IMG/VR virus record: IMGVR_UViG_3300023179_000009
Location: 124,001-188,000 of that record
DNA length: 64,000 bases
Direction: 5' to 3' (one strand)
This document shows, in pieces, positions 13,708-61,282 of this stretch (positions are counted from its first letter, which is position 1; every line of letters starts with the position of its first letter). The notes under the pieces were generated by a model. The model saw only the letters and a program-made list of their open reading frames with translations, did not search any database and had not been told where the DNA came from. The position numbers were made by a program, and so were the translations under genes.

Positions 13708-13940
13708 GTGATTTCTTAAAAATTCAAAGTTTGATCCAAGAAGGTTTTTCTTGCTTGGGTATGCTTAATGAAGCTCAATCTAAGTGTTGTTTAATAAAAA
13801 ATAAAATTGAAAATGATTTTTTTAATGAAGATTTTGACCCATCCACCGAAATTAATCAAATATCAGCCGACATCGATACATATTCCAATAAGTTGTTTTT
13901 GCTTAAAAAGGAATTAAAATCTTATGGGGCAATTTGTTAA
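13704..13940 (+). CDS. Hypothetical protein
   Basis: AAGGAG RBS, overlap with upstream stop. Confidence 0.65.
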   Translation: MSDFLKIQSLIQEGFSCLGMLNEAQSKCCLIKNKIENDFFNEDFDPSTEINQISADIDTYSNKLFLLKKELKSYGAIC

Positions 13941-14331
13941 TTGGAAAGAATGGCTTCTTTTTAAAGAATCAAAATCTAAGAAAAGAAAAAATAAAAAGAA
14001 AACGCTTGCGGTAAATTTTTTAAATTATTATCATCCCTATTATAGTGATGACAATAGTGGAGAAGAAATAACAGGAGCAGATCATCAAGGAGACTCAGGA
14101 TCTGAGATATCAGAGTCCAAAAAAAGTATAAGAACACCAAATTATTTTTTTGATAAATGGCTGGAAAAAATTGAAGATTTACAGAAGGAAGTCAAAAATT
14201 TAATCAACAAGCCAGAGACAAAGAAGCCAGAGACAAAGAAGCCAGAGACAAAGAAGCCAGAGACAAAGAAGCCAGAGACAAAGAAGCCAGAGACAAAGAA
14301 GCCAGAGACAAAGAAGCCAGAGACAGACTGA
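13924..14331 (+). CDS. Low-complexity protein with CTS-like N-terminus and (KKPET)n tail
   Basis: MGQFVNWKEWLLFKE N-terminus; C-terminal NKPET plus 7x KKPET. Confidence 0.7.
   Translation: MGQFVNWKEWLLFKESKSKKRKNKKKTLAVNFLNYYHPYYSDDNSGEEITGADHQGDSGSEISESKKSIRTPNYFFDKWLEKIEDLQKEVKNLINKPETKKPETKKPETKKPETKKPETKKPETKKPETKKPETD
14206..14325 (+). repeat. 15-bp tandem repeat AAGAAGCCAGAGACA x7 plus one 1-mismatch copy
   Basis: Read directly; the seven copies at 14221-14325 are identical. Confidence 0.97.
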
Positions 14332-14332
14332 G

Positions 14333-14800
14333 TTGGTAGATATTTTTATGCAAAATGATTTTTGTTTTGTGTTCGATACAAATGAACATCTTAAATATAC
14401 AAAGTTTATTTCTAGAGATTCAAAAGAAATTAAGAAATCCTTACACGTTCAGCAAAATATTGTTGGTACTTTTGTGTACGCTCTTTGTGTTCACGAAAGT
14501 TTAAATAAAAACAAAAAAATAGAAATCAAAAATAGTTTTGGAAACTGTTTAACGCCAGAAGTTTACGATACGGTCAGAGATTTGTTTTGCTTTGAGGGCG
14601 TTGATGTTTCCTATATAGGATTTGTTCCAATAAGTTACAGGATAATATCTCCCGAGTCAGATTGGGATTCATATGTTCCTTTGCCTTTTTCTTTAATTAA
14701 AAAATACTTAAATAAAGAAGAAATTACTAATTTTTCTAAATGGTCAAGTCAATATAAAGATCAACATTTTAAAATACAATTAATTCAATTTGTTGGGTAA
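14333..14800 (+). CDS. Hypothetical protein
   Basis: 155-aa ORF in operon; start uncertain. Confidence 0.65.
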   Translation: MVDIFMQNDFCFVFDTNEHLKYTKFISRDSKEIKKSLHVQQNIVGTFVYALCVHESLNKNKKIEIKNSFGNCLTPEVYDTVRDLFCFEGVDVSYIGFVPISYRIISPESDWDSYVPLPFSLIKKYLNKEEITNFSKWSSQYKDQHFKIQLIQFVG

Positions 14801-14803
14801 AAT

Positions 14804-15334
14804 ATGGCAAAATTTAGACAGACCGCAGATAGAGATTCTAGATACATGGGCCTTGCTTGGATGATGGCATATTGTTCAAAAGACCCCAATACGCAAGTCG
14901 GGGCTTACATAGTGTCTGAAGATAATTATGTTTTAGGAGGAGGATATAATGGCCCGCCGAGAAACATTAAAGATGAAGACGTTAACTGGGATAGGTTTCC
15001 TAACGAAGAAAATAATTTATGTAAGTATGATGTAATTATTCACGCAGAGATTAATGCGATGAGTAACATGTATTTACAAAATATAAATTTATTAAATGCA
15101 ACACTTTATGTAACCGCTTTGCCTTGCCCAACTTGCATGAAGCAAATTGTCGGTAGAGGTATAGGCAGAGTTGTTTATTTGGATTTTCAATCCAGTCCAG
15201 AATCAAGTCTAAGAAACACAGAATGGTGTGAAAAAACTTTTAAAATAGCTAATCTTGGCAACACAAAAGTTGAAAAATTCATAGGCAACATCGATTGGGT
15301 GGAAGATTGGGCCTCAAAACGTCCAAAAAATTAG
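14804..15334 (+). CDS. dCMP deaminase
   Basis: SKDPNTQVGA, GYNGPP, HAEINA, PCPTC zinc-deaminase motifs. Confidence 0.92.
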   Translation: MAKFRQTADRDSRYMGLAWMMAYCSKDPNTQVGAYIVSEDNYVLGGGYNGPPRNIKDEDVNWDRFPNEENNLCKYDVIIHAEINAMSNMYLQNINLLNATLYVTALPCPTCMKQIVGRGIGRVVYLDFQSSPESSLRNTEWCEKTFKIANLGNTKVEKFIGNIDWVEDWASKRPKN

Positions 15335-15367
15335 AAATATTTGGATGGAGTTTTCTGGCAGTAAACA

Positions 15368-15375
15368 TATAAATA
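15368..15375 (+). promoter_or_regulatory. TATAAATA, T4 late-promoter-like element 5 nt before ATG 15381
   Basis: Exact T4 gp55 consensus directly upstream of a probable virion gene; the AT-rich background lowers certainty. Confidence 0.4.
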
Positions 15376-15380
15376 ATATC

Positions 15381-16424
15381 ATGGCTTTAAAATATAACCT
15401 AAAAACAGGAAGTTGCAATCATAATTGCAGAAACATTGAATCGGAAATCAATCCAGATTTTTCTATAAAAAGACACGATACAAGGCCCTCTTTTCGTGTT
15501 TCAATAGAGGATTGCAATGGACCTTTTGATTTTCGTGGATTAATTGTTGAAATCAATATGTGGTCCGCTGCAAAATTGAAGACAGACCTGAGCGAATCTG
15601 CTGATTATTTTTCTGTTGCCGATAATATAGGGTTCAATCAGATTATGGTGGGAGACATCATCATAGTGGATCAGGTAAGATCACCAGAAAAGATGTTGGT
15701 TCTTGGTTTTGATGAAAAAAATAAATTTATTAAGGTCCAAAGATCTTATCACGGAACAGATGCCAATTCTTATAAAAAAGGAACCAAGATAAGAATTTTT
15801 AGAATAATGAATGAACAAGCTAGAGTAGAAATGGATTTTAAAGATGTTGAAAATGTTGATGGCACACTTGATAATGATGTCATTCAATCTTCTTTTTTAA
15901 CATATGATTGGAAGCCAGAGGACACATGTCTCCCAGGAATCTATTACTTGGAATTCAAGGTTTTAAAAATGATAGATGTTGTTTATTTTATTCCTGATGG
16001 TGCTTGGGTTGGCGAAGTGTTTAAAAATAATGAAGACGGATTCTATTACACAGGTTCCACCGAATCCAACTCATCCGTTAGATTAGAATACAATCAAGTG
16101 GATAATAAGTATTTCTTAAAACAAATTCCTTGGAACGGCGAGATCCACCTCCACTCAGATAATCAACACTACACTGGAGAAAATCACAATGACGGCTCTG
16201 TGTTGTTGATAAAAGATAAATCAGATAAAAGTAATTCCTATAACAATAATGGAATTTTAAATTCTCAAAACGTCTCGGTTATACCGAGTTTTACAAGCCC
16301 CAGTTTAACACCCGAAGATTTTGGTTGTTTTATAGGGGAAGGCGTTGAGTGGGTCAGAAGATTTCCTTCTAATAACGAAGGATTCATTGTGCAAATAGTC
16401 GATAGTTTTACAACAGAAATCTAA
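15381..16424 (+). CDS. Probable virion structural protein (BppU-like N-terminal domain)
   Basis: IKRHDTRPSFRVSIED and YDWKPEDTCLPGIYYLEFKV resemble baseplate upper-protein N-domains; start placed at ATG 15381. Confidence 0.55.
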   Translation: MALKYNLKTGSCNHNCRNIESEINPDFSIKRHDTRPSFRVSIEDCNGPFDFRGLIVEINMWSAAKLKTDLSESADYFSVADNIGFNQIMVGDIIIVDQVRSPEKMLVLGFDEKNKFIKVQRSYHGTDANSYKKGTKIRIFRIMNEQARVEMDFKDVENVDGTLDNDVIQSSFLTYDWKPEDTCLPGIYYLEFKVLKMIDVVYFIPDGAWVGEVFKNNEDGFYYTGSTESNSSVRLEYNQVDNKYFLKQIPWNGEIHLHSDNQHYTGENHNDGSVLLIKDKSDKSNSYNNNGILNSQNVSVIPSFTSPSLTPEDFGCFIGEGVEWVRRFPSNNEGFIVQIVDSFTTEI

Positions 16425-16443
16425 GAAAGGATATAAAGCCCTA

Positions 16444-17019
16444 ATGGCTATAAATGGTAATTTTGGAAGGTATTCAAAGTTTGATGATAATTCAAAAAAG
16501 GATCGAGTCAGGTGCAACGAACAAATCAGAATACCTCAGGTTTTAGTGATTCATGATGGGAAAAATTTAGGGGTGATGCAAAGCAGATCAGCCCTACAGT
16601 TGGCTAGAAGTTTTGATTTAGATTTGGTTGAAGTTGCTCCCAACGCCAGACCTCCAGTTTGTCATATTATAGATTACGGAAAATACATGTATGACAAGCA
16701 AAAGAAGCAAAAAGAATCCAATAGTAAACAAAACCAAGTTAAAGAAAAAGAAATAGACTTCAGGTACGTTATAGCTGATGGGGATCTTAATACAAAATCT
16801 AATCAAATAAGAGTTTTCTTAACAAAAGGCTACAAAGTAAAGTGTGTTTGTAAATTTAGGCAGCGTGAAAATGCTCATAAAAATCAAGGCTTTGAGGTTT
16901 TCAAAAAGTTATTGGATTCTTTAAATGATATCGCAGCCGTTGAATCTCCGCCAAAACTTGATGGAACTAATATAGTTTGTCGTTTAGAACCAATTAAAAA
17001 TAAGTCAAAAGTATTATGA
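16444..17019 (+). CDS. infC: Translation initiation factor IF-3
   Basis: NEQIRIPQVLVI, DLDLVEVAPNARPPVCHIIDYGKYMY, KEIDFR, FLTKGYKVK. Confidence 0.95.
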   Translation: MAINGNFGRYSKFDDNSKKDRVRCNEQIRIPQVLVIHDGKNLGVMQSRSALQLARSFDLDLVEVAPNARPPVCHIIDYGKYMYDKQKKQKESNSKQNQVKEKEIDFRYVIADGDLNTKSNQIRVFLTKGYKVKCVCKFRQRENAHKNQGFEVFKKLLDSLNDIAAVESPPKLDGTNIVCRLEPIKNKSKVL

Positions 17020-17843
17020 GATGTTTAGTTACCGGAGGGTCGGGATTTATCGGCTCTCATCTTGTTGATAAATTGGTTTCTTTGAATTATGAAGTTGTTT
17101 CTTTAGATTGTGCTTTGTGCAAGTACGAAAATCCAAAAGCAACATACAAGTATGGTTTTGTTCAAAATATAGAATCTTTTCATTTTTTAAATTTTGATTT
17201 TATTTTTCATTTGGCGGCTTTGCCAAGAATTCAGCCTAGTTTTAAAGATACAACAAATGTTCATGATTCAAACACCACGGGGACTTTTAAAATTTTAGAG
17301 TTTGCAAAAAAATCAAAATCTAGAGTAATTTTTGCTGGATCCAGTTCTGTTTTGCATGACATTTATGCTAATCCTTATTCTTTTAGCAAAAGCATAGGCG
17401 AACAATATTGTGTTCTTTACAATAAAATTTTTCAAGTTCCTGTGGCTATTGCTAGGTTCTTTAATGTTTATGGGCCTAGACAAATTGAAGAAGGAGAGTA
17501 TGCCACCGTTGTGGGAATTTTCGAAAAGCAAAAAAAGCAAAATAAAAATCTTACAATAACAGGAGATGGCGAACAAAGGCGTGATTTCACCCACGTAGAT
17601 GATATAATATCTGGCCTCGTTTGTATAATGAAAACAAATTGGAATTTCGAAATTTTTAATTTAGGATCAGGTAAAAATTATTCTATTAATGAAATAGCTT
17701 CTTTTTTTAATTCGCCTGTTGAGTATATTGAATCTAGAAAAGGTGAGGCAAAAACAACGCTTGCCGATATTGAGTACACTTGTGCAAAAACTCAATGGAG
17801 TCCTGTAGTTGATATAAAAGACTATATTGAAAAAATTATTTGA
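17016..17843 (+). CDS. NAD-dependent epimerase/dehydratase (extended SDR)
   Basis: VTGGSGFIGSHL, YSFSK, RFFNVYGPRQ, RDFTHVDD. Confidence 0.92.
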   Translation: MRCLVTGGSGFIGSHLVDKLVSLNYEVVSLDCALCKYENPKATYKYGFVQNIESFHFLNFDFIFHLAALPRIQPSFKDTTNVHDSNTTGTFKILEFAKKSKSRVIFAGSSSVLHDIYANPYSFSKSIGEQYCVLYNKIFQVPVAIARFFNVYGPRQIEEGEYATVVGIFEKQKKQNKNLTITGDGEQRRDFTHVDDIISGLVCIMKTNWNFEIFNLGSGKNYSINEIASFFNSPVEYIESRKGEAKTTLADIEYTCAKTQWSPVVDIKDYIEKII

Positions 17844-18451
17844 AAACAATGTACAATCATAAAGACGGTGTAGTGTTAAGAAAAATTGAAAGAAGTGACC
17901 TCCAGTATCTTTTGAATTTAAAAAAAGAAAGTTGGTGGGGAACTCATTCTACACAAATAATTAACTTAGATGATCAAAATTATTGGTTTGATAACATTCC
18001 CAAAAATCAATTGTTTTTAATTGGAGAAGTTGAATGTGAAAGAATAGGTGTTGCCTCTTTAACCAATATAGATACCACAAACGGATCCCTCAACATATCA
18101 GGATCTGTTTTTAAAAATTATAGATCAAAATGGGCTTTTCCTTCTTTCTGTGCGGGTCTGGATTTTGCTTTTGAGATGTTTAACGTTCATCGTGTGGAAG
18201 CAGAAGTTCTGGAGTACCATGTGACAGCTCAGAAATTAGAAATTGAAAAGTTGGGATTTGTTGTAGAGGGCAAAAAAAGAAAATCTGTATTTAAATGTGG
18301 AAATTATTACGATTCAATCATATTAGGTATGCTTAGAGAAGATTGGTTAAAAAGCGAACGTGTAAAGCAATACGGAGATAGTTGCAATTTAAATTTTAGT
18401 CCAAATAGATTTAAAAAATTATCTAATTACTTTTCTAGAAAACTACCCTGA
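17840..18451 (+). CDS. GNAT N-acetyltransferase (RimJ/PseH-like)
   Basis: LRKIERSDL, FAFEMFNVHRVEAEVLEYH, LGFVVEGKKR, YYDSIILGMLREDW. Confidence 0.8.
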   Translation: MKTMYNHKDGVVLRKIERSDLQYLLNLKKESWWGTHSTQIINLDDQNYWFDNIPKNQLFLIGEVECERIGVASLTNIDTTNGSLNISGSVFKNYRSKWAFPSFCAGLDFAFEMFNVHRVEAEVLEYHVTAQKLEIEKLGFVVEGKKRKSVFKCGNYYDSIILGMLREDWLKSERVKQYGDSCNLNFSPNRFKKLSNYFSRKLP

Positions 18452-21175: not shown

Positions 21176-21497
21176 TTTAAAAAATAATAAAATATTTTTA
21201 ATAGTTGTTTTTTTAATTACAAGCAATCTGCTAGGTTTTGCTTTTAGTAAATTTATAATCAACGCCACAACAGATTGCGTTATTGAAAAATTAAAACAAA
21301 ATTATTCTCCATCTCCATATGGTCCAGGTTTCGACCCAGATAAAGTGAACCCTGAGAGTTTGCAGGTTGACACTCAGGGCGACGAATTATACTCAAAAAT
21401 TTCTTTTAAAAATGATCTCGCCCATGGATCTTATAATGGATTTGAATCTTGGCAAAAAGATTGGGAACAAGATCGTGGCTTCAATCCAGTACGATAG
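21168..21497 (+). CDS. Hypothetical protein with N-terminal membrane anchor
   Basis: Hydrophobic [18 protein letters not shown]; GGAG RBS. Confidence 0.65.
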
Positions 21498-21900
21498 CTT
21501 TTTCTATTTTTGAAAAATTTTTTGAAAAATCATTGGGGTTTCTTTGAAACACCAAAGTTATAGTTTTGTTTATTTCAGGAATTCCTTTTATCTTTCTAAA
21601 CTCAACCTCAGAAAACAAGCACTCGGTTCCATCCGACAAAAGCATTCTTATTGGGGTCTTTTTAACGTCTAAAAATATTATTTTTGCAGTTTTTTCTATA
21701 TTTGGAATCACTAAATCAACAGGCTCTTTTTGATTATTTATGCTATCGTTTCCTCTCCATGGAGAATAATCATAAGTGTTATTTGTTGCCGATGATAAAA
21801 AATTTGAATAATTTTTGTTGTCAAAAATTTTATTTATTTTCTGTTCTATGTCTCCTAATCCAAACTCTTCTTTAATTAAAAATTGTTTAAATTTGGACAT
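21481..21900 (-). CDS. Hypothetical protein with CTS-like N-terminus
   Basis: Begins MSKFKQFLIKEE. Confidence 0.7.
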   Translation of the reverse strand: MSKFKQFLIKEEFGLGDIEQKINKIFDNKNYSNFLSSATNNTYDYSPWRGNDSINNQKEPVDLVIPNIEKTAKIIFLDVKKTPIRMLLSDGTECLFSEVEFRKIKGIPEINKTITLVFQRNPNDFSKNFSKIEKAIVLD

Positions 21901-21937
21901 ATATTACTCTTATAAAATATAGGCAGCCCCAATATCT

Positions 21938-22727: not shown

Positions 22728-22732
22728 CTATT

Positions 22733-23790: not shown

Positions 23791-23794
23791 TTTA

Positions 23795-24124
23795 TTACTT
23801 AGATTCTCTCCACTTTAACCACTCTTGAAAAGTTGGAAGTGATTTATGGTATTTTTGACTCTCTTCTTTTTTGCAATCGCATCCCTCTTCACAATCACAA
23901 TCTTTTTCTTTTATTGCTTTTTGTATTGCTTCTCCTCTCTTCTTTTCATATGAAGAAAGTTTCCCATCTTTATCCAAGTCCGCTTTTTCTTTGTTTATTT
24001 CATGATCATCATGATTATCTTTGTTTTTTGTTTTTTTGTTTTTTTTGCTATTTAAAATAGCGTCTTGTAATTTTTGGGGTAATTTTTCTTGTGCCGGTGT
24101 GAGTTTGCTGCTTGATTTTTTCAC
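23795..24124 (-). CDS. Hypothetical charged protein with EF-hand-like DLDKDGKLSSYE motif
   Basis: KADLDKDGKLSSYEKKRGEAI; C-terminal PTFQEWL; GTG start with AAGGAG. Confidence 0.65.
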   Translation of the reverse strand: MKKSSSKLTPAQEKLPQKLQDAILNSKKNKKTKNKDNHDDHEINKEKADLDKDGKLSSYEKKRGEAIQKAIKEKDCDCEEGCDCKKEESQKYHKSLPTFQEWLKWRESK

Positions 24125-24937: not shown

Positions 24938-26089
24938 TCACACGCTTGTTACTCTCAAAGGCGTTATTTGACGACCAGATTTGCCCACGATCCCAATTTG
25001 GTCATTGATTTTTATTTTTGTTGGCGAAGATAACAATGTTCCATTTAAAATAGTTTTATTCACCGCTGTCGCAACGGGAGTAATATACCAACCATCTTTT
25101 GATTTTTTAAATAGCATTTGTGGGTTTGAGAAATATTGAGACACCTCCTGCCCCAAATATTGTTTTAGCCGTATTGCTCCTATAGTTGCGTCAATGTTTA
25201 TATTTATTGGCCCCCCGTTCGTTGCTATAGTTAAGGTTTTTGGAGAATATTCTTGTGAAGTTGATTGTGGATTTTGGCTTGTTTTCGATTGACCATGCCC
25301 GCTTAAATAAGGAGAAGCGACAGGGTCAGACATTAAAAATTCTAGTTCTGTATCTTTCCATAACCGTAACTTTGTAGTTACAAAATTAGGTCTGGGAATA
25401 CCAGGTTTACTTAATAATATTGCAGATAATCTTAGACTTACAAGCTCGGTCTGACTAAGTTTATTACCAGTGCTACCTGTAAAATCTTCTCCTGTGTCTG
25501 TCGCCAATCCTAAAACATTGATTCCTTTTGTGAGTTCGCCTATTTTGCTTTCGCCTTGTTTCGATAAATAAATTACAAAATTATCCCTCCTGGATTCAAA
25601 ACTGCCCCCTTTGGCTGCAAATTTGAACTTGCGGAAGTTTGCTGAATTTTGTTTTATAAATTCAGCAAGATTCACAGCATACTCTAAATTACTTGGTGGT
25701 ATTTTTACATGTATCTTTTTTTTCGCATCATCGGGTTTATATCCCTCGATTTCAAAAAAGTACCAAGATCCCTCAGTGTCATTTGTGACATCAAAACCCA
25801 TAGATTTAATTCTATTAGCAATTGTGTATAATTTAGACGCCAACTCTGGATTTGTTTCTGGCATGAACATTCCTCTACTCGTATCACCAGATATTAAATT
25901 ATAAAAAGCATCCTTCCAATTGTGTCCTAGTTGAGTATATTGGTCCGTCTTAAAATTAGGAATCACCCCCGCACTGGACAAATTTTTTATTGCATCTTGA
26001 TATGTGGGTGCGGATAAAATCAATGAAGACAATCTCTTAAAGATATCTTCGGCACTTTCCATGTTTTCTAGCCAAATTTTAAATCGCAT
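24938..26089 (-). CDS. CTS-bearing protein with putative phosphothreonine-lyase-like domain and C-terminal FHA domain
   Basis: N-term MRFKIWLENME; middle KKIHVK...KFKF...RRDNFVIY...VSLR; C-term YFSNPQMLF...WYITP...NKTILNGTLL...IKINDQIGI. Confidence 0.55.
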   Translation of the reverse strand: MRFKIWLENMESAEDIFKRLSSLILSAPTYQDAIKNLSSAGVIPNFKTDQYTQLGHNWKDAFYNLISGDTSRGMFMPETNPELASKLYTIANRIKSMGFDVTNDTEGSWYFFEIEGYKPDDAKKKIHVKIPPSNLEYAVNLAEFIKQNSANFRKFKFAAKGGSFESRRDNFVIYLSKQGESKIGELTKGINVLGLATDTGEDFTGSTGNKLSQTELVSLRLSAILLSKPGIPRPNFVTTKLRLWKDTELEFLMSDPVASPYLSGHGQSKTSQNPQSTSQEYSPKTLTIATNGGPININIDATIGAIRLKQYLGQEVSQYFSNPQMLFKKSKDGWYITPVATAVNKTILNGTLLSSPTKIKINDQIGIVGKSGRQITPLRVTSV

Positions 26090-26561
26090 TGTGCAAAGTC
26101 CTTATAAATCCCATCCACTCAGGGTTGTTGTAGGTTGCATTTTTGTGTTTGGAATAAAAATTGGCATAGCAATGACAAAAAATTTCTTCGGGTATTTGTT
26201 TTAAAGAATCCTTTGCCTCAGGATTTTCTTGTGTTTGTTTTTCAAAGTTTTTTTTAACAACACTAGACCATTGATTTTTTATTTCTTTTGATAATCTTTC
26301 ATATACAAGATGAGCTATTTCGTGGAGAATTGTAAATTCTCTTGAAAAATTCCAAGGTGCCGCTATTGCTATTTCTTTTGAGTATTTGTCCATATAGCCA
26401 ACGTGCTTATCATCTCCATTTAGTGTGTTTCCGGCATGAAACTTCCATTTGTACCCTCTAACAAGATCTGAGTGTGCTTTTGGTAACTTGGAAAGAGTTT
26501 TTTGAATATCTTCTTTTTCTTCTTCCATGTTATCTTGAAGAAATTTTTTAAAGTTTAACAT
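26079..26561 (-). CDS. Zincin-like metallopeptidase domain protein with CTS-like N-terminus
   Basis: TILHEIAH (HExxH) and downstream EEIFC; begins MLNFKKFLQDNMEE. Confidence 0.65.
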   Translation of the reverse strand: MLNFKKFLQDNMEEEKEDIQKTLSKLPKAHSDLVRGYKWKFHAGNTLNGDDKHVGYMDKYSKEIAIAAPWNFSREFTILHEIAHLVYERLSKEIKNQWSSVVKKNFEKQTQENPEAKDSLKQIPEEIFCHCYANFYSKHKNATYNNPEWMGFIRTLHNAI

Positions 26562-26599
26562 AAAAGTATTTAGTTTTTTCTATTATATTTTGTACAAAC

Positions 26600-31317: not shown

Positions 31318-32241
31318 ATGATTTTAAAAATTTTTTTGTCTGTTATGTTAGCTTTTTTATTCACGGCCAACTCCTTGGCGGATGAAAAAATTACTAGGGT
31401 GTCTAGCCCAAGTGAAGTTTCTACGGAAGTTTCAAAATATCGTGGTGTTCCCAAAGAATTGGAAAATCTTGTTTGGAACAGATGGACTAGCAAGAACTTT
31501 GTGGTGTGCAGCCTGAACGATTCCCAAGCCCAATATTTGCACAAACACTTAGAACTTGTTAAATCTTGGATGTTTTTACGTTGGGGCATGAAGGACATAG
31601 ACTTTTCAACAACATGCAAATTGATATGTGTTGACGACAAAGAGTTGTTTAAAAAGTTGTTTAATATCGAAAATACAAAAGTTGAAATTCGTCGAGATGA
31701 AAACAAAAAAATAACCGAGACCGTTATTTTTTTGTTGATAGATGGAACCCCATCTCAAACAATACCAGTCCCTTTGACCCAAATTTGTTTGGCTGAATTT
31801 TCTCAAAAATTTCGAGTTGATTTTAAAACTTGGATTTACAAGGGTTTTTCTCATTTAAATGATTCTCTTATAAAAATTAGAGAAAATTTAAACAAATTAG
31901 AAGATTACAAAAATAATAATTCCTTTGTCGTCAAAGATTTAGTTGATTTTGATAATGAAAAATATAAACAATTAAAAGATGAAGATAAAAAAATATTTGA
32001 TTGTTATTCTATGTACCTTTGTCTCATGATCAGAAAAGAATTTGGCGAAGATGTATTTCTAAATTTTATTCAAGAATCTTCAAAAGAAAATTTTGAATAC
32101 GCTGTTAAAAATGTTTTAAAATTTGATAGTTTGGAACATTTTGATAAATCTTTTCAAAGATATTTAAAAGATTTATCAAATGATGTAAAATTAGGAAAAA
32201 CTCCAAATTATTATTTGCAAATTAATTCTAAAGATAATTAG
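31318..32241 (+). CDS. Secreted protein, degenerate peptidase-MA/gluzincin-like fold
   Basis: Signal peptide ending ANSLA|D; WIYKGFS and YSMYLCLMI align loosely with gluzincin-like proteins, but HExxH is absent. Confidence 0.45.
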   Translation: MILKIFLSVMLAFLFTANSLADEKITRVSSPSEVSTEVSKYRGVPKELENLVWNRWTSKNFVVCSLNDSQAQYLHKHLELVKSWMFLRWGMKDIDFSTTCKLICVDDKELFKKLFNIENTKVEIRRDENKKITETVIFLLIDGTPSQTIPVPLTQICLAEFSQKFRVDFKTWIYKGFSHLNDSLIKIRENLNKLEDYKNNNSFVVKDLVDFDNEKYKQLKDEDKKIFDCYSMYLCLMIRKEFGEDVFLNFIQESSKENFEYAVKNVLKFDSLEHFDKSFQRYLKDLSNDVKLGKTPNYYLQINSKDN

Positions 32242-32453
32242 TTCTTTTTCATGGATTTTTTCATCATGGAAGCATTTGTTGGATTTGAATTTCCAGACGA
32301 GGATCTCGGTGTAGAACCACCCACAGATCTTAAATTTTTAAAAGGCAATCCATCAGACGGCTTTCGGGCAAATAAAGATACAGGAAAACCCATCAGCCCC
32401 TTGTCAGACGCACTTTGTTCTTCCTGAAAATCAATAAATTTCTTAAATCTCAT
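32238..32453 (-). CDS. Small protein with CTS-like N-terminus
   Basis: Begins MRFKKFIDFQEE. Confidence 0.65.
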   Translation of the reverse strand: MRFKKFIDFQEEQSASDKGLMGFPVSLFARKPSDGLPFKNLRSVGGSTPRSSSGNSNPTNASMMKKSMKKN

Positions 32454-32467
32454 AATTATTATATACT

Positions 32468-37546: not shown

Positions 37547-37634
37547 AGACAAGTAGCTCAATGGCAGAGTCCGTCATTGTAAGAAGGTTTGCACCTTTGG
37601 ACGGAGGTTGCAGGTTCAATTCCTGTCTTGTCTT
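37547..37634 (+). tRNA. tRNA-like RNA (Thr-UGU-like loop) with 17-nt hairpin insertion in the anticodon arm
   Basis: Acceptor AGACAAG/CTTGTCT, D arm GCTC-AATGGCA-GAGT, stem CCGTC/GACGG enclosing 24 nt, T arm GCAGG-TTCAATT-CCTGT; no CCA. Confidence 0.75.
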
Positions 37635-45577: not shown

Positions 45578-45650
45578 CAGGGCGTAGCGCAATTGGTAGC
45601 GTCCTTGCTTTGGGAGCAAGTGGTTGGAAGTTCGAGTCTTCTCGCCCTGA
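45578..45650 (+). tRNA. tRNA-Pro(UGG)
   Basis: CAGGGCG/CGCCCTG acceptor, CTTGC-TTTGGGA-GCAAG anticodon arm, TTCGAGT T loop; no CCA. Confidence 0.93.
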
Positions 45651-46597: not shown

Positions 46598-46668
46598 GCG
46601 GGTGTGGTGTAGTAGTAACACGAAAGTCTTCCAAACTTTAGATTTCGGAGCATAACCGAATACCCGCT
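46598..46668 (+). tRNA. tRNA-Gly(UCC) with non-canonical D/T loops
   Basis: GCGGGTG/TACCCGC acceptor, AAAGT-CTTCCAA-ACTTT anticodon arm, D loop AGTAGTA, T arm TTCGG-AGCATAA-CCGAA. Confidence 0.85.
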
Positions 46669-46686
46669 CTTTGGAGTTAATTAATA

Positions 46687-48461: not shown

Positions 48462-48699
48462 AGATGCTCTTCTCGGCATCGGAACCAAAAAAGGATCGGA
48501 AGATTCTTTGGTCTATGATTATGATAAATGTGTAGAAATATTAATCGAGCGAGAAGGCATGTCGCACGAAGAAGCAATTGAGTGGATGGAATTTAATGTT
48601 GTAGACGCTTATGTTGGCCCGACTACCCCAATATTCGTTCACACGGACCCAGAATATACAATTCAATATATTCAATCTAATAGTGACGACATTGCCTAG
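48436..48699 (+). CDS. Conserved phage-type hypothetical protein
   Basis: ADGFEDALLG...VYDYDKCVEIL...GMSHEEAIEWMEFNVVDAYVGPTTPIF; 3' end overlaps tRNA-Cys. Confidence 0.75.
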   Translation: MLLQADGFEDALLGIGTKKGSEDSLVYDYDKCVEILIEREGMSHEEAIEWMEFNVVDAYVGPTTPIFVHTDPEYTIQYIQSNSDDIA

Positions 48700-48767
48700 T
48701 GGCGACGGCAACAGTCTGCAAAACTGTCGAGGAAACTCCATCGTGGGTTCGAGTCCCACTGTCGTCT
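48685..48767 (+). tRNA. tRNA-Cys(GCA) with long variable arm
   Basis: GACGACA/TGTCGTC acceptor, U73, ACAGT-CTGCAAA-ACTGT, variable region CGAGGAAACTCCATC, GTGGG-TTCGAGT-CCCAC. Confidence 0.88.
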
Positions 48768-48821: not shown

Positions 48822-49091
48822 ATGAAAACTTTTCAGCAATTTTTAGAAATGCAAACACCCGTTGTTGGCGGCAGTCAACCAATACCAAGCCCTTTATCTT
48901 CATATGATTCAACGGGTGCAAGGTACACACCTGACCAAATGCCAGAAAAATACCAACAATACAAAAAAGACATCATAAGAGTTTGGGATTTTATACAAGC
49001 CCAGTCGGTTTCTTTAAACAAACCAGAACTTCAAAAAATATTCCACGAATTTATCAATTCTCTAAAGTCAGCCGGATTCACCGGTGCTTAG
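48822..49091 (+). CDS. Small protein with CTS-like N-terminus
   Basis: Begins MKTFQQFLEMQ. Confidence 0.7.
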   Translation: MKTFQQFLEMQTPVVGGSQPIPSPLSSYDSTGARYTPDQMPEKYQQYKKDIIRVWDFIQAQSVSLNKPELQKIFHEFINSLKSAGFTGA

Positions 49092-51001: not shown

Positions 51002-51004
51002 TTC

Positions 51005-53236: not shown

Positions 53237-53237
53237 T

Positions 53238-54518: not shown

Positions 54519-54521
54519 AAA

Positions 54522-55769: not shown

Positions 55770-55945
55770 CAGACTATGAAAGCAATGATGATTATTTTGA
55801 TCAAGACGGTCCTATATACAGTATTTTAGAAGACAAAGGTTGCTGTTGTCCCGATGAAACCGGCGACCGCTGCGGAAGTGACTGTTGTTGTTGCGGACTT
55901 GGCTTTGCCCCAATCGGCCCAGGTTGTGCATGTGCGCCAGCTTAA
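55766..55945 (+). CDS. 59-aa acidic-leader, Cys-rich peptide (not in ORF track)
   Basis: MTDYESNDDYFDQDGPIYSILEDKGCCCPDETGDRCGSDCCCCGLGFAPIGPGCACAPA; ATGA overlap with the upstream stop; fills an otherwise empty gap. Confidence 0.75.
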   Translation: MTDYESNDDYFDQDGPIYSILEDKGCCCPDETGDRCGSDCCCCGLGFAPIGPGCACAPA

Positions 55946-55977
55946 AAATTCTTAACAAAAATTGAAAGATTATAAAA

Positions 55978-56241
55978 ATGGAAATTGAAAAATTATCAAA
56001 AATAATTTACGCTTTGACACTAAGAGACAGGAAGGATAAACAAAGTTTTTGGTTTGAAAAAGGCTTTAGAAGAATGCACGAAATGGGAATAAACTTACTA
56101 GATTATTGGCAGAAGAAAATACAGTCCAACCCAGAATATTATGAAAAATTAGCTGAGGAAGTTTTTAAAAAATATGAATTTTTAGAAAACAACCCAGAAT
56201 TAAAAAATATTCCTAAACCACCAAAAAATTATGATAAATAA
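55978..56241 (+). CDS. Hypothetical protein
   Basis: 87-aa ORF. Confidence 0.65.
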   Translation: MEIEKLSKIIYALTLRDRKDKQSFWFEKGFRRMHEMGINLLDYWQKKIQSNPEYYEKLAEEVFKKYEFLENNPELKNIPKPPKNYDK

Positions 56242-56632
56242 TGCAAACATTTTAGATTGTTTAATTTTGCTTTCAAAAAATGTAGAATCCTTCAATTTAT
56301 TAAAAAAAGAATTTCCCGATATTCTAGCAGATTTGGTTAGTTTTCAAAATAACAATAACTGTAGTTGTAAAAATAAATTGATTAATTTTTTTATAGAAAA
56401 AATTAATAGTGATTCAAATTTTTTTGATAAATATATAAAAGATAATGATTTTTTTACAAAATTAGATAATTTATCAAAAGAAAAATTAGAAAAAAATTAC
56501 GCCGGTAGGGTTTTTGTTATTGAAAAAAATGAATCTTCTTGGAAACAATTTACTCAAAGTTTAGTTGGTAAAAATTTTAAAATGTTTAGTGTCGCAGAAA
56601 GAGAAGACACAGTAGCTGTTTATTTTTTATGA
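56231..56632 (+). CDS. Hypothetical protein with CxC motif
   Basis: NNCSCKNK; coupled to neighbours. Confidence 0.65.
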   Translation: MINNANILDCLILLSKNVESFNLLKKEFPDILADLVSFQNNNNCSCKNKLINFFIEKINSDSNFFDKYIKDNDFFTKLDNLSKEKLEKNYAGRVFVIEKNESSWKQFTQSLVGKNFKMFSVAEREDTVAVYFL

Positions 56633-56913
56633 TTTTTGTAATTTATCTAATGTCTACTTTGGGAATTTGCTACGCTTGGAGCGACACAGAGGTTAGTGTT
56701 CCTCTGAGAAATTATGTGGCCAGATTTCCTTTTCTAAGAAAGGTTTTACTTTGTCACGAGTGTTCTAGTTTTTGGATAAGTTTAGCAATTAGTTTTTTTA
56801 TTAATCCAGCAGAAGGGTATTGTTTTCCGATAATAAGTAATTTTTTAAGCGCTTTTTGTGGATTTTTTATTAATTTATTTTTTGTTAGAAACAATAAAAT
56901 ACCTTCTAATTAG
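56629..56913 (+). CDS. Small membrane protein with CxxC (DUF1360-like)
   Basis: LRNYV...LLCHECSSFWISL; family recalled, not searched. Confidence 0.55.
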   Translation: MIFVIYLMSTLGICYAWSDTEVSVPLRNYVARFPFLRKVLLCHECSSFWISLAISFFINPAEGYCFPIISNFLSAFCGFFINLFFVRNNKIPSN

Positions 56914-57970
56914 ATATTTTTTGAATTAATTTTATGGATTCTTTCAAAGATATATTTTTTATTTGACATTCCCTTAATCTAAATATTTGATCCAAGTTGT
57001 AATCTTTTGCTTCTTGTGCCCAATCCTCCGATAATATTTTTTTTCTTATATCAATGTCGGGATTATCAAAGCATCTTGTGAATTTAAAACGACTTGGACG
57101 ATTTTTAAGTGCATCATCTACTTTGTTTATGTCATTCACTGTCATGATAAAAACAACATTTTCATATGTGTTGTACACACCATCTAATCCATTTAGTATG
57201 ATATCAAATGTAAACTTGATTTGTTTGTTTTCTCCTCCTCCAAGGATACACTTTCGACCATCAAAATAATTATCAAAATCTTCAAATAAAACTATACATT
57301 TTTTTGGAATTTGCGCAAACAAAAGAAGCAAATCATGATTGGTCCAATCAGGATTTAGTGTAAATATCATGATCGGCAATCTGTATGTTGTTGCCAGATA
57401 TTTTACTAAAGAAGTTTTTCCGTTCCCTGGAGGGCCATATAAAAGTGCCGATGTTTTTTTTCTATCACCAGCAACAACCTCTATGACTTCTTTTTCAAAA
57501 TCTTTCCAAAGAAATTCATTCACTATTGGTGGTGGCGGTGTTTCTTTTAAAGATCCTATTTTGTCAACACCGTATGGCATCATCAACTCCACAGGGATGC
57601 CAAGGTTAATTAGTTGTAGTTCTTTTAACTTTTCTTTTAGAAATTTTTTTATGTTCTTGTATTGCCATCTTAAACAATAAATTGTTGTTATATAATCTTT
57701 GCTACTAAAACCAGCTTGCATCAGCCGTTCGTTGTGATAAATATAGAACCAAGGAGCGTCTTTAAAAAAGCAAAAAGAAGAATATTCAATCGGATGGCGT
57801 TCATCGGACACAAATTCTTCACTTAAAACTATTTGTCTTTGATTTTTAAATAAATCGAATAAAGTTTTAAATGTATTTTCTTCTATCCTTATTTCTATCA
57901 ATATTAAGTACTTAAAAACAGCCCAAACTCCAAATCCTGATGCGATTATTGCTAAAATATTTGATAACAT
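56906..57970 (-). CDS. BCS1-like membrane-anchored AAA ATPase
   Basis: N-terminal TM; LLYGPPGNGKT, VLFEDFD, ILNGLDG, FIMTVND, RPSRF. Confidence 0.85.
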   Translation of the reverse strand: MLSNILAIIASGFGVWAVFKYLILIEIRIEENTFKTLFDLFKNQRQIVLSEEFVSDERHPIEYSSFCFFKDAPWFYIYHNERLMQAGFSSKDYITTIYCLRWQYKNIKKFLKEKLKELQLINLGIPVELMMPYGVDKIGSLKETPPPPIVNEFLWKDFEKEVIEVVAGDRKKTSALLYGPPGNGKTSLVKYLATTYRLPIMIFTLNPDWTNHDLLLLFAQIPKKCIVLFEDFDNYFDGRKCILGGGENKQIKFTFDIILNGLDGVYNTYENVVFIMTVNDINKVDDALKNRPSRFKFTRCFDNPDIDIRKKILSEDWAQEAKDYNLDQIFRLRECQIKNISLKESIKLIQKISN

Positions 57971-58005
57971 TATTATATTTTAGCAATATTTTAAACTTTT
58001 GTAAA

Positions 58006-59496
58006 CTATTTCCAACTTATTGGCTCGCTGCTCTTTTTACGTTTTGTTCCCTTTTTGTTGCAAGCAGATAGAGTTGGCCTACATGCCGGATAACTTCTTT
58101 CGGCTCCCTTGCCTGTTTTTTTTCTTCCACATGGTACCAAATGACCTTTACGGCTTTTTTTACAATCTATCCAGCCCTTTCCATTATTTCTATCAAACCA
58201 CCCTTTAAGTCCACGTTCTTTTTCTAAATCAAATGCTCCTTCTCTGAAGTCTTCAGGTTTTACGGTTCCCTTCGCCACAGATCGTATTCTTGCTGCGAAC
58301 AACCCTGGCCCCACACCCTCAGGTATTTGTTTTCCTAAAGATTGCATTGATTGAATTATTTGTTCGCTAGACATTTGAGATACATCCATGCCTTGATACA
58401 TTAAAGCCATAGCAACGCTCATGGCATCACTGTATTGCTTTGGTTCTTTTAGTTTTTCATCAAGATGAAAAACTTGTTCTTGCATGTGCTTTTTTTTCTT
58501 TTTAGAATTGCCCCAATTTTTAGCACCAACTTTGCGGCACTTTACAAGTGCCCCCGAGTTGCCAGTTATAGTAATCAGCCCGTTGCCATCCGTTTCCTGC
58601 ATCATGACCCAAGTGCCGTTCTCTGTTTGAGGACACCAAACATCCGCTTTTCTTTTTTCTATTAATTTAAAATTTTCTAAATGTTTGGTGCCATTATAAG
58701 CAACATAATGGCAACCATAAACGTTGGTAGTTTTGTGTTTTTTAAATGTTACCAATCCCTTATTTAGAAAAGCAGATATTAGGAATGCATCCCTGTGATT
58801 TATATCTTTTTGTTTAAATCCGAAAGATTGTTTTCCATGTGGTGAACCATACATGTACTCATGATTACTCTCATTCTTCTGCACAGTTAATCTTTGTGTT
58901 TTGATTTGATTTCCATCATAAACTATGGCACTATAAAGCCAACTTTCACGTTGCTCTGGCGAGCAATTCAAAAGATACTCAATCCAATTTGTTTGATATT
59001 TATAAATTTTATCTAAGCTGATTGGATTACCCCCATGGTATTTTGAACTTATGACCAACGCTCTGTTGCTCCCAGATCCCGATACAATTTCTTCAGTTGT
59101 TAACAACCTCATATCATTTACAAGGTCGGTGTGTCTTTTTCTTCCTCTGTTGCCTTTGCATTTAGGGTATTTTACAACCCATTTATGATTTGGGGTGCAT
59201 TCAAATTTCCAACCAGTATTGCCATTTTTAATCACATAAGTTTCAGCATCTTTGTAATTAAACAAATTTAATATTGGCTTAAACTCAAGGCTGTCTTTTT
59301 CAAGATTAAATGTTAGAATTTCTTCTCCAATTTGAAGCTGTTCGTGTGTCTTCCAGCCCTCTCTTGTAAGAGCTTTGGAAGTCTCTACCGGAACACAGGC
59401 ATAAGCTGAAGGCCAAACGGAATACCTGCTTTTTACCTTGTGATAACAAGCATCCTTTTCTTCATTTAACTCAAACCATTCTTTAAAACTTTTCAA
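58006..59496 (-). CDS. CTS-bearing phage hypothetical protein, intein-interrupted
   Basis: TTG start (MKSFKEWFELNEE) with AAGGTGG RBS; spliced extein DACYHKVKSRYSVWPSAYA|SGALVKCRK. Confidence 0.75.
   Translation of the reverse strand: MKSFKEWFELNEEKDACYHKVKSRYSVWPSAYACVPVETSKALTREGWKTHEQLQIGEEILTFNLEKDSLEFKPILNLFNYKDAETYVIKNGNTGWKFECTPNHKWVVKYPKCKGNRGRKRHTDLVNDMRLLTTEEIVSGSGSNRALVISSKYHGGNPISLDKIYKYQTNWIEYLLNCSPEQRESWLYSAIVYDGNQIKTQRLTVQKNESNHEYMYGSPHGKQSFGFKQKDINHRDAFLISAFLNKGLVTFKKHKTTNVYGCHYVAYNGTKHLENFKLIEKRKADVWCPQTENGTWVMMQETDGNGLITITGNSGALVKCRKVGAKNWGNSKKKKKHMQEQVFHLDEKLKEPKQYSDAMSVAMALMYQGMDVSQMSSEQIIQSMQSLGKQIPEGVGPGLFAARIRSVAKGTVKPEDFREGAFDLEKERGLKGWFDRNNGKGWIDCKKSRKGHLVPCGRKKTGKGAERSYPACRPTLSACNKKGTKRKKSSEPISWK
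58558..59397 (-). mobile_element. Intein (280 aa) with degenerate LAGLIDADG-like remnant
   Basis: Starts CVPVETSKALTREGW, block B CTPNHKW, EQRESWLYSAIVYDG, block F DVWCPQTENGTW, ends TGN plus Ser+1. Confidence 0.88.
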
Positions 59497-59708
59497 AATA
59501 CCCACCTTAAAAACAAAAATGCAAACAAAACTATTCCAACAATCATCAAAGTAGTTCCACCAAAAAACCAGAAGGCCAGGAGACCGAGTGCTATTATGGT
59601 AAAAGATTTTTGTTGCTTTGCCTTGTAGTCGAGATAAAGATATCTTCCTATAAAACAAGCACCAACAAGTAAAGATACGATTGCTGCTATTAAAAGATAG
59701 TTTTCCAT
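59493..59708 (-). CDS. Small membrane protein
   Basis: Two or three hydrophobic helices in 71 aa; overlaps the start of the downstream gene. Confidence 0.65.
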   Translation of the reverse strand: MENYLLIAAIVSLLVGACFIGRYLYLDYKAKQQKSFTIIALGLLAFWFFGGTTLMIVGIVLFAFLFLRWVF

Positions 59709-59717
59709 TTTTGCCCT

Positions 59718-59981
59718 CTATAATTTTTTGATTTTTACCACTAAGTCTCCATCACCTTTGATGACACGATGCCATTCATTTGCTTTTATTTTTATTGGTT
59801 TTTGAATACTCTCAGGGAGTTGATTGTCTCTTTGAAACAACCAATTTGTTTGTTTTAAAGGAATCACTAGGCGATCTTCCTTATCTTTGTGCCATTTTAA
59901 TTCATGTGAATGAACGTCCCCAGAAAATGTTCTTACATATTCTTTTGTTGATACTTTTTTTTCTTTAAATGGCAGACTCAT
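59718..59981 (-). CDS. Small cupin-like protein
   Basis: ELKWHKDKEDR...IKANEWHRVIKGDGDLVVKI. Confidence 0.65.
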   Translation of the reverse strand: MSLPFKEKKVSTKEYVRTFSGDVHSHELKWHKDKEDRLVIPLKQTNWLFQRDNQLPESIQKPIKIKANEWHRVIKGDGDLVVKIKKL

Positions 59982-60137
59982 ATAAATATATATATTGATT
60001 GGTTCATTTTCGCTGCCTTTTAATTTGTAAATCGAAGAAGAATGGTGTCAGAATTTAAAGGGTTGCGTAAGTCAATGACTATTTGGTTTTCACCATTTCT
60101 CAAATACGAGATAACGAAATGAACCGTATATACCATT

Positions 60138-60635
60138 ATGCAAACTTTTGAAGAGTGGTTGGTTAAAAACTACCCAGAATCATTGGACGAAAACTGGCGA
60201 AGGACATTGGGTTCTTTTGCTCTTGGTGCCGCTTCTTTTTTGCCCATGGCTAATGCTCAAGCGGCCCCGCCATCTGCCCTCCAAGCAGCCGCAACACAAC
60301 CAGTGTCTCAAAATCAAAAAACAAGATTAGACGCAATGAAAAGAGTCTCCACCGTTCACAAATTCAAGAAGAACTGGGGATCTGAATTCGGATCACAACA
60401 AGAGCAAAAACTTTTTGACACCATACTAAAATTGCAAACAGAGAAGGAACATGATGACCTCTTGAGTAAAATAGAAAAAGATAAAGAAGATTTATTTCGT
60501 TATCAAATGCAAGGACGATATCACCCAGATAAGAACGTCCAACAATCTGAGGTGCGACAAATAAATAATTCAAGAGATTTCCAATATATGGATTACCTCA
60601 AGACACTTGTGATTGCAAGTAAAATTAATCTTTGA
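60138..60635 (+). CDS. Protein with CTS-like N-terminus followed by a hydrophobic segment
   Basis: MQTFEEWL...ENWRRTLGSFALGAASFLPMANAQAA. Confidence 0.7.
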   Translation: MQTFEEWLVKNYPESLDENWRRTLGSFALGAASFLPMANAQAAPPSALQAAATQPVSQNQKTRLDAMKRVSTVHKFKKNWGSEFGSQQEQKLFDTILKLQTEKEHDDLLSKIEKDKEDLFRYQMQGRYHPDKNVQQSEVRQINNSRDFQYMDYLKTLVIASKINL

Positions 60636-60637
60636 AT

Positions 60638-61282
60638 TTACCAAGGGCGACTACTCTTGAGGCCCAAAGATTTTGAATATCGTGCCACGTTGCACGACCA
60701 GTAACCGGGTGTTGTGCGATCTTTCTTTTCGTGACATTTGTGCCTTGCACGAAAACTTTTTGCACGAGCGGGACTATTATTTTTAATGCTAAGACCTGAT
60801 GCCTTTGAGTCTCCAAAACGAACCATTTTAATTCTTCCACTTGGTGTTTTTACGTACACCTTGAATTTTTTAGGACCGCCTGGAGTTCTCATGGGTTTGT
60901 TTAATGGAGGATTCTTTTTTGATTTTGATTTTTTAGATTCATTTAAATTTTTTGATTTATCCAAGAATGGAGCATCCAAATAAATTGTTTTTCCGTTATG
61001 CTCAACCACCATCCCTACATCTGTTTCTAACAAATCGGCATCTTGATCGTTAACTTCTATTAAATTTTTATTATAAAGTTCTCGGGTTTCATTTATTAAA
61101 TCAAAATATGCTTTACTATAAACACGAAATATGTTTTCGCACAAGGATAAATTATTATCTAAATGATATTTTAAATTTTCACTTATTTTTATATTACTCA
61201 GCAGTCTCATTGGGCTGATAATGTTTTGTTCTTTTAGTTTTACAAAATTTGCAAAAGAATAATCTTTGTTTGAATTTATCAT
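60638..61282 (-). CDS. Phage hypothetical protein with basic Cys/His C-terminal domain
   Basis: LNKPMRTPGGPKKFKVYVK...VRFGD...KSFRARHKC...GYWSC, a module I recall from large T4-like phages. Confidence 0.7.
   Translation of the reverse strand: MINSNKDYSFANFVKLKEQNIISPMRLLSNIKISENLKYHLDNNLSLCENIFRVYSKAYFDLINETRELYNKNLIEVNDQDADLLETDVGMVVEHNGKTIYLDAPFLDKSKNLNESKKSKSKKNPPLNKPMRTPGGPKKFKVYVKTPSGRIKMVRFGDSKASGLSIKNNSPARAKSFRARHKCHEKKDRTTPGYWSCNVARYSKSLGLKSSRPW

Follow-up and report, generated by a model that had tools for sequence, protein, structure and literature searches.

The 64,000-nucleotide stretch of DNA analyzed here (the window) comprises bases 124,001–188,000 of a single virus record of 458,813 bp, IMGVR_UViG_3300023179_000009, and it carries part of a gene family that is defined by a short N-terminal leader resembling the capsid-targeting sequence (CTS) of the internal head proteins of phage T4. 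Genome-wide, the curated family numbers about 41 genes out of roughly 680. The leader takes the form M-x(1-3)-F-x-x-[F/W]-[L/I/V]-x(0-4)-E over 10–15 residues, with the F at position 3, 5 or 6 in some members; it is predicted to be a short amphipathic helix, and many leaders are followed by Gly/Pro/Ser-rich linkers. We think it probable, though far from certain, that the bulk of these proteins are loaded into the phage head, and the most economical account, in which we place a similarly moderate confidence, is that this clade kept the prohead-core loading of T4 and greatly expanded its use.

We called genes over the whole record with our own simple codon-usage caller, which gave 670 genes at 92% coding. 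Thirty-two of the 670 start with M-x(0-3)-F-x-x-[FW]-[LIFVM], four of these being signal- or transmembrane-like, whereas shuffling, either by permuting residues 2–12 within each protein or by permuting columns between proteins, gives 5.1±2.1 matches (maximum 13–14 in 2000 trials). The genome-wide comparison of N-termini with shuffled sequences that had been suggested as a check on the original prediction therefore shows the enrichment. The motif stands at 5.2% of called starts versus 0.77% of internal in-frame Met codons and 1.5% of other ATGs, and its per-position frequency at residues 2–5 is 11-fold that of protein interiors. A motif-free count finds F at position 4 in 73 proteins (35 expected), W at position 7 in 21 (9.8 expected) and an over-representation of Leu at position 8. 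The original prediction had picked out nine N-terminal peptides between 13924 and 61282, and we located every one of them, position and strand included, with the qualifications that the protein at 59496 has a TTG start, that the motif of the protein at 61282 begins at residue 9 and that the peptide at 13924 is imperfect. The curated set of about 41 was reached after adding starts that the caller had missed, including those at 26089, 32453 and 59496, and the span of the original prediction (13924–61282) thus holds about one quarter of the family. When the first 16 residues are removed, an all-against-all BLASTP comparison finds one related pair among the 41, and the bodies behind the leaders are therefore unrelated. 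Clustering of the leader genes along the genome is weakly significant (p 0.04). No enrichment is seen at C-termini, where the motif occurs 6 times against 4.2±1.9 expected; the C-terminal PTFQEWL of the gene at 23795–24124, which had been offered as a further example, was accordingly rejected as chance-like.

The same caller and patterns were run on ten other genomes, using two pattern versions, A and B. Matches (A/B) number 28/22 in this genome and 17/20 in a relative, G001 (IMGVR_UViG_3300049215_000771, 532,729 bp), whose capsid protein shares 82% identity with that of this genome. The counts are 1/2 in T4, 3/3 in KVP40, 3/5 in P-SSM2, 1/1 in Syn9, 0/1 in phiKZ, 1/1 in T5, 1/0 in SPO1, 0/0 in Bacillus phage G (140 kb) and 5/5 in Staphylococcus phage K (140 kb); the T4 counts lack ipII, which the caller did not pick up, and IPI, whose residue 8 does not fit the pattern. 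Shuffles of G001 yield 6.6±2.5 leader matches compared with 32 observed. The variant with Trp, F-x-x-W-[LIVMF], was counted 16 and 13 times in the two giant phages, versus 0–1 times in the nine other phages. Convincing leaders are found in P-SSM2 (NC_006883: 99763, 100269, 158143), where they read MKSFKQFLEE, MRTFQEFLQL and MKSFSQFLTE. A few leader-like N-termini are thereby present in the distant T4-type phages P-SSM2, KVP40 (NC_005083: 37733, 39187) and Syn9 (NC_008296: 149735), with MKQFCNFLAE and MKKFSAFLSE as further examples from this group, and some of them stand in adjacent genes.

The CTS of the T-even phages was reportedly studied by Mullaney and Black in 1996. It is carried by the internal proteins IPI, IPII, IPIII and other Ips (PMC9026906; PMC3012670; PMC12373910). 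Ten N-terminal residues of IPIII are enough for packaging; residues 4 and 7 act in targeting and residues 8 and 10 in processing, and gp21 cleaves after L/I-x-E (PMC9026906). In the T4 record IPII and IPIII start MKTYQEFIAE/A (slash, presumed processing site) and IPI starts MKTFKEFTSTTTPVSTITE/A (MKTFKEF). The positions conserved in the present family, namely an aromatic residue at 4 and 7, L/I/V at 8 and Glu at 9–12, are the mapped determinant positions of IPIII. Eight proteins, with leaders such as MKTFQEWLNE, MKSFNEWLVE and MKNFNEWLNE, keep the exact T4 register [FY]-x-x-[FW]-[LIV]-x-E. Of 40 proteins, 19 have a [LIV]-x-E site no more than 12 residues behind the motif, and in the others a Glu is present with a different residue at P3; the control rates are 10% at other N-termini, 12% at internal positions drawn at random and 13% behind the core motif where it occurs inside proteins. 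In the mature parts of the leader proteins, [LI]-x-E is present at a median of 0.47 per 100 aa versus 1.15 in other proteins (p 0.004), a depletion that is partly compositional and that gives weak evidence for what exposure to a prohead protease would select for. We also note that T4 gp61.1 (54 aa; NC_000866: 18966-19130 (-), gene 61.1) starts MKTFKEFIKED, close to the IPI leader.

Head-assembly genes of the T4 type are present in the record. The prohead protease matches Peptidase_S77 (PF03420, E 9e-26) and PHROG 207 'head maturation protease' (E 6e-49), the major capsid protein is of the gp23 type (PF07068, E 9e-87), and BLASTP finds homologues of the T4 terminase, portal (gp20-like) and sheath proteins. 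Between the protease and capsid genes sits the gene for a helical protein of 298 aa that is rich in Glu and has about 20 [LIV]-x-E sites; it appears scaffold-like, with the features to be expected of a gp22-like scaffold. Immediately 5' of the protease gene (G000:C1:438661-440484 (+), where G000:C1 is the whole record) lies a gene for a 607-aa Lys/Glu-rich protein with about 27 [LIV]xE sites and no family match. It occupies what we take to be the position of the T4 core proteins gp67 and gp68, and it is a candidate for an additional core or internal head protein. Only 18 proteins of the virus match T4 at a BLASTP cut-off of 1e-5, which places it at a great distance from T4 within the T4 assembly lineage. 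Beside the head module (portal, protease, scaffold and capsid genes) stands a 115-aa leader gene that recurs in 17 related loci at 30–47% identity, and in all 17 the protein keeps F/W at position 4, W/F/Y at position 7 and L-[KR]-E-G at 13–16.

Other families keep their leaders as well. Homologues of a 383-aa leader protein encoded in the window start M[RNDK]FK[ILV]WLEN[MI]E-SAEDI, and one of them, P0019, joins the same body to another leader of the same class, MIKTFKQFLEDRQ. In the family of a predicted 160-aa peptidase, also from the window, F4 is invariant, as are the HExxH residues. A flavoprotein family with 235 homologues has the pattern in 86 of 120 among those listed, including MKTFAEYLAEA, nearly the T4 sequence. 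The leader precedes known domains: position 1 of the FMN_red profile falls at residue 20 of the 288-aa flavoprotein, and the DUF5662 domain begins at residue 22 of its leader protein. In AF2 models built from alignments, the leader is of low confidence and lies outside the fold. A 137-bp 5' segment, 94% identical between its two copies, fronts two genes with unrelated bodies (genome 27384 (-) and 455310 (+)); it consists of a GC-rich hairpin, TATATA, a Shine-Dalgarno sequence and the first 10 codons (MKSFNEW), and the similarity stops right behind the leader. Its hairpin recurs alone at 86187-86246 and 190964-191010. The first Phe codon is TTT in 33 of 41 leaders in this genome (35% G+C) and TTC in 20 of 30 in G001 (53% G+C), and the hydrophobic motif position is encoded by 13–15 different codons. 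The peptide is thus kept while the codons differ both between and within genomes, which argues for selection on protein rather than on DNA. Judged from these sequences, leaders are exchanged between genes. Taken together, the T4-type head genes, the conservation of IPIII positions 4, 7, 8 and 10, the [LIV]-x-E sites and the conservation among orthologues uphold the analogy to T4 capsid targeting that the original prediction had drawn.

Many leader genes are also marked at the DNA level. Within the 30 nt upstream, 17 of 41 leader genes have a TATA-like element compared with 44 of 640 others (p 5e-9). When the box is defined as nTAnATA followed by 4–6 nt and ATG, it precedes 14 of 46 leader genes in this genome (30%) versus 18 of 624 others (odds ratio 15, p 1e-9), and 18 of 38 in G001 (47%) versus 25 of 776 others (odds ratio 27, p 3e-15), the background being 0.3–0.5% of all ATGs. 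Most often the spacer is 5 nt long (14 of 20 cases in G001), and in the window the box stands before the genes at 26561, 32453 and 60138. A TATA-like box is found at 2 of 6 late-gene homologues among the 18 T4-matching proteins, and PHROGs returned nothing for the box-bearing genes that lack a leader. The box is similar in sequence to the T4 late promoter, TATAAATA. In that promoter the last A lies about 6 nt before the transcription start, and transcripts from the box would therefore begin at or beside the AUG; the spacing thus suggests that the mRNAs of box-bearing leader genes are leaderless. With the box before up to half of the leader genes, box and leader together look like a portable cassette that turns a gene into a head-loaded one. 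It is possible, although we hold this only tentatively and with some doubt, that such a promoter-plus-leader cassette (nTAnATA, 5 nt, ATG, M-x-x-F-x-x-W-L-x-x-E), expressed as leaderless mRNA, serves as a portable loading tag on more than 40 unrelated genes per genome across a widespread clade of giant freshwater T4-like phages and assembles a kit of injected effectors and enzymes.

The leader could instead be a docking helix for another partner, be it a chaperone, a host or phage hub such as the clamp or RNA polymerase, the membrane or another phage compartment, with the leader genes forming a co-regulated regulon in the producing cell. We consider this, the main rival, unlikely. As a pattern the motif is generic (amphipathic, i, i+3, i+4), and enzymes with plausible intracellular roles (a CCA-adding enzyme, a flavoprotein) are in the set. 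Several observations can be held against head loading in general. In Staphylococcus phage K (NC_005880, L150-L156), in which we found no match to Peptidase_S77, 5 of 212 called genes are leader-like compared with 0.2–0.7 in shuffles, the form being F/Y-x-x-F/Y-[IL]...E (e.g. MDFNQFINNE, MRFEDFLTQE, MENYKNFIIEE). This outlier is unexplained; because phage K is enriched without a T4-type protease, the motif alone is not proof of capsid targeting, and enrichment of an N-terminal F-x-x-F-[IL] helix can have other causes. A canonical [LIV]-x-E is present in only about half of the leaders, and some conserved candidate sites read N-M-E or M-E-E. With 18 proteins in common with T4, T4 rules may not transfer. 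The bearers include unlikely cargo, namely a carbamoyltransferase-like protein of 435 aa and an M36-like protein of 481 aa with an atypical leader. Finally, a search with T4 gp55 as query found no gp55 homologue, a search that is decisive neither way, and the role of the box as a late promoter is putative. What speaks for the head rather than another partner is that the conserved positions are the mapped determinants of the T4 leader, that Glu and [LIV]xE are enriched directly behind the motif and [LI]xE is depleted in the mature parts, that the conserved 115-aa leader gene adjoins the portal, protease, scaffold and capsid genes in its 17 loci, and that C-termini, the usual site of clamp-type motifs, are not enriched.

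A second alternative, which we regard as improbable, is that the conserved 5' coding sequence serves expression, through leaderless initiation or early elongation, and that the peptide itself has no function. Such a constraint would account for the presence of the box 4–6 nt before the ATG in 30–47% of leader genes versus about 3% of others, and for box and first codons traveling together in the 137-bp segment. However, the amino acids are kept whereas the codons vary, both inside each genome and from the 35% G+C genome to the one with 53%, many leader genes (e.g. 59496 and genome 27384/455310) have an ordinary Shine-Dalgarno sequence and no box, and other box-bearing genes lack the peptide. 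That the family is an artefact of composition, start calling or hidden paralogy is very improbable: although the genes come from our own simple caller and AT-rich codons favor K, F, N, I and L, the shuffles and the equally enriched 53% G+C relative rule out composition as the cause, hundreds of homologues have matching N-termini in the independent gene calls of public databases, relatedness between bodies is limited to one pair, and Bacillus phage G, phiKZ, T5, SPO1 and Syn9 give 0–1 matches in the same pipeline.

Under the head-loading model, by analogy to T4 IPI–III and Alt, the leader would dock the newly made protein onto the scaffolding core during prohead assembly. The prohead protease would then cut after the Glu of [L/I/V/M]-x-E behind the leader and free the mature protein inside the shell, where DNA would be packaged around it. 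At infection the leader proteins would exit with the DNA and act at once in the host, again as in T4.

We next consider what the leader proteins might do. Pfam and PHROGs family scans of those in the window left mostly orphans, and searches for FHA, lyase and intein sequences in Pfam, NCBIfam and PDB gave only sub-threshold matches, so that fold searches were needed. The AF2 model of the 383-aa protein has a mean pLDDT of 86, with residues 1–7 below 50. Residues 282–383 match FHA domains (VIA Z 11-11.7, rmsd 1.7–3.1, 83–91 residues aligned), and one homologue carries a precomputed PF00498. Residues 14–257 match LxmY (LxmKY chain B, 9dk3_B) with Z 11.3 over 208 aligned residues, as well as LanKC lyase domains (8sap, 8car; Z 11) and HopA1 (4rsx; Z 11.0), and Foldseek adds matches to SpvC (2q8y, 2z8o, 2p1w). 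K125, H127, K129, R153, K156, R167, R168 and D169 are invariant in the family. By the fold matches, the N-terminal domain is predicted to have a phospho-Ser/Thr-lyase-like fold, shared with the OspF/SpvC/HopAI1 phosphothreonine lyases and the lyase domains of class III/IV lanthipeptide synthetases, and the lyase–FHA fusion named in the original prediction is supported at the fold level. Unlike those lyases, the protein has no Pfam or PDB match at the sequence level and is fused to FHA and a phage leader. Its targets are presumed to be bacterial phosphoproteins. Its gene begins 11 nt inside the peptidase gene upstream, an overlap that speaks for 26089 as the genuine start.

The 160-aa peptidase has 81 homologues, and H80, E81 and H84 are invariant in 52 sequences. 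Its AF2 model has a mean pLDDT of 90, with residues 1–10 averaging 56. Foldseek retrieves M34-type zincins (PPEP-1/Zmp1 and the catalytic domain of lethal factor) at modest scores (TMq 0.5–0.57, E 0.02–0.1), and the Pfam matches to ATLF (E 0.007) and M78 (E 0.02) both miss their cut-offs. At the fold level the model points to a putative small zincin-type metallopeptidase, in line with the HExxH peptidase that had been proposed from the sequence. Leader proteins encoded outside the window include a 720-aa HD plus CCA tRNA nucleotidyltransferase (NCBIfam E 4e-38) whose orthologues start MKSFQQWIIES, the WrbA/FMN-reductase-like flavoprotein of 288 aa and the DUF5662 protein; the rest of the family consists mostly of orphans.

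The features of the window that bear on the family are collected in the table, together with the two copies of the 137-bp segment.

Table. Leader genes, boxes and related features. Positions are those of the window unless prefixed G000:C1, in which case they are those of the whole record.
Feature	Position	Strand	Remarks
135-aa ORF, start MGQFVNWKEWLLFKE (MGQFVNWKEW)	13924..14331	+	imperfect leader, K at position 8
139-aa orphan, leader MSKFKQFLIKE/E	21481..21900	-	F4, F7, L8; I-K-E at 9-11
109-aa ORF, tail ...SLPTFQEWLKWRESK	23795..24124	-	C-terminal PTFQEWL; excluded from family
383-aa protein, leader MRFKIWLENME	24938..26089	-	lyase-like fold + FHA (predicted)
160-aa predicted metallopeptidase, leader MLNFKKFLQDNMEEE	26079..26561	-	HEIAH at residue 80
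CTAAATA box	26567..26573	-	5 nt upstream of peptidase-gene ATG; resembles promoter -10 element
71-aa ORF, leader MRFKKFIDFQEE	32238..32453	-	rival 53-aa ORF on + strand
GTATATA box	32460-32466		6 nt upstream of 71-aa ORF
89-aa orphan, start MKTFQQFLEMQ	48822..49091	+	Pro/Gly/Ser-rich linker next
496-aa protein, leader MKSFKEWFELNE/E	58006..59496	-	TTG start six bases behind AAGGTGG
GTATATA box	60126-60132		5 nt upstream of 60138 ORF
165-aa orphan, leader MQTFEEWL	60138..60635	+	L-D-E at residues 16-18
214-aa protein	60638..61282	-	PHROG 7595 at C-terminus; YSFANFVKLKE at residues 8-18, motif from residue 9
Shared 137-bp segment, first copy	G000:C1:27354-27488	-
Shared 137-bp segment, second copy	G000:C1:455205-455340	+

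The ORF at 13924 has a Lys-rich stretch behind its leader and gives a low-complexity match only in Pfam; its membership of the family is uncertain. At its C-terminus (window 14230-14331 (+)) eight tandem KPETK repeats follow poly-Lys. The protein at 21481–21900 has no Pfam or PHROG family, and the N-terminus at 48822 is the closest in the window to that of T4 IPI (MKTFKEF). Orthologues of the protein at 61282 begin directly with MEFEDYVIMRE or MNFDDYVIMRE. The body of the 496-aa protein contains a widespread phage motif, CYHKVKSRYxVWPSAYA/SGALVKCRK, and PHROG 727 matches its residues 13–38. An insert of 280 residues (window 58558-59397 (-)) splits this motif between WPSAYA and SGALVKCRK; it has Cys34 (C34VPVETS...) and TPNH (TxxH block B) and ends ...ITITGN/S (Asn313/Ser314). 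Pfam returned nothing for the insert and TIGR01445 matches it at E 0.008, missing the cut-off, while its neighbors among Atlas features carry LAGLIDADG_3, Hom_end and Intein_splicing. The insert is probably an intein with a LAGLIDADG endonuclease, to go by these sequence features.

In several small leader proteins a second motif, R-T-G-A-[KR]-L-G-[LI]-Y ... YPPL, lies behind the leader (G000:C1:323493-323717 (-) and 452961-453227 (-); L036:15603), and A-[RK]-L-G-L is present at a similar distance in leader proteins of P-SSM2 and Syn9. Four tRNA genes, all on the + strand, are scattered in the window: Thr-TGT (37547-37634), Pro-TGG (45578-45650), Gly-TCC (46598-46669) and Cys-GCA (48685-48767). 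Outside the window, about 100 copies of (T/A)GATACCAACTAG are found at G000:C1:265397-358796 (+). Its core, ACCAACTA, occurs 114 times versus about 18 expected, with one copy before nearly every gene of the 95-kb block; at 342–359 kb the motif stands every ~300 bp and is followed by perfect GC-rich hairpins ending CTAG. From its placement, the repeat looks like a phage-specific promoter or promoter–terminator unit.

The record is linear according to IMG/VR and 91% complete by the CheckV estimate, with a G+C content of about 35% (34.9%) overall and about 32% in the window. G001 has 52.7% G+C, a large composition difference within one capsid lineage. The DNA of the record has been found in lake and freshwater metagenomes from several studies. 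Among the 24 runs listed, 20 hold at least part of the window stretch, all of them DNA, and two metatranscriptome runs contain almost nothing of it. When 8 kb of the window were compared by megablast with a phage collection, nothing matched. A related capsid protein is encoded on at least 390 IMG/VR contigs, some of which reach 533 kb, and the 80 best share 81–98% identity with the one encoded here.

Proteins that enter the host together with phage DNA act ahead of any phage gene expression. Should the leader indeed direct head loading, candidate first-strike effectors could be catalogued by a simple sequence rule, about 40 per genome across hundreds of uncultivated giant phages. To our knowledge, neither a lyase–FHA fusion, nor a CCA-adding enzyme, nor a flavoprotein belongs to an enzyme class known as phage cargo, and the kit (lyase–FHA, zincin, CCA-adding/HD enzyme, flavoprotein) might compare in breadth with the effector repertoire of a bacterial secretion system. 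The T4 targeting rule would then extend to very distant relatives, and new tags would become available with which foreign proteins could be loaded into large capsids. The box further points to leaderless, late-promoter-like expression cassettes in T4-type phages.

Short tags that fill a shell are familiar from encapsulin, in which diverse enzymes are sent into an HK97-fold shell, but the likeness is conceptual only: encapsulin tags are usually C-terminal, of other sequence and uncleaved, and nothing is injected. In the phiKZ-like giant phages (phiKZ, 201phi2-1, SPN3US) many head proteins are trimmed after Glu by a gp21-related protease, gp175/gp245 (PMC9026906). There the propeptides are long, the cuts fall at S/A-x-E and a short common leader is lacking; phiKZ gives 0–1 pattern matches. 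The protease here is a plain Peptidase_S77. The closest parallel is the T4 CTS. Both are N-terminal leaders of 10–19 residues on otherwise unrelated proteins, and the sequences themselves are alike (MKTYQEFIAE and MKTFKEF in T4; MKTFQEWLNE and MKTFQQFLE here; MKTFAEYLAEA in related phages); as in T4, a gp21-type protease, a Glu-rich scaffold and a gp23 capsid protein are encoded, and the leader is exchangeable between genes. The differences lie in scale and detail. T4 has three leaders, with about 10 Ip types across the T-evens, all small inhibitors, and all three injected internal proteins of T4 disarm restriction enzymes (PMC12373910). The present genome has about 40 bearers, and the predicted cargo includes enzymes of up to 720 aa as opposed to small GmrSD inhibitors. 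Furthermore, Trp is common at the second aromatic position, unlike in T4, KVP40, P-SSM2 and Syn9, the F may stand at positions 3–6, and a promoter-like box abuts the ATG of many leader genes.

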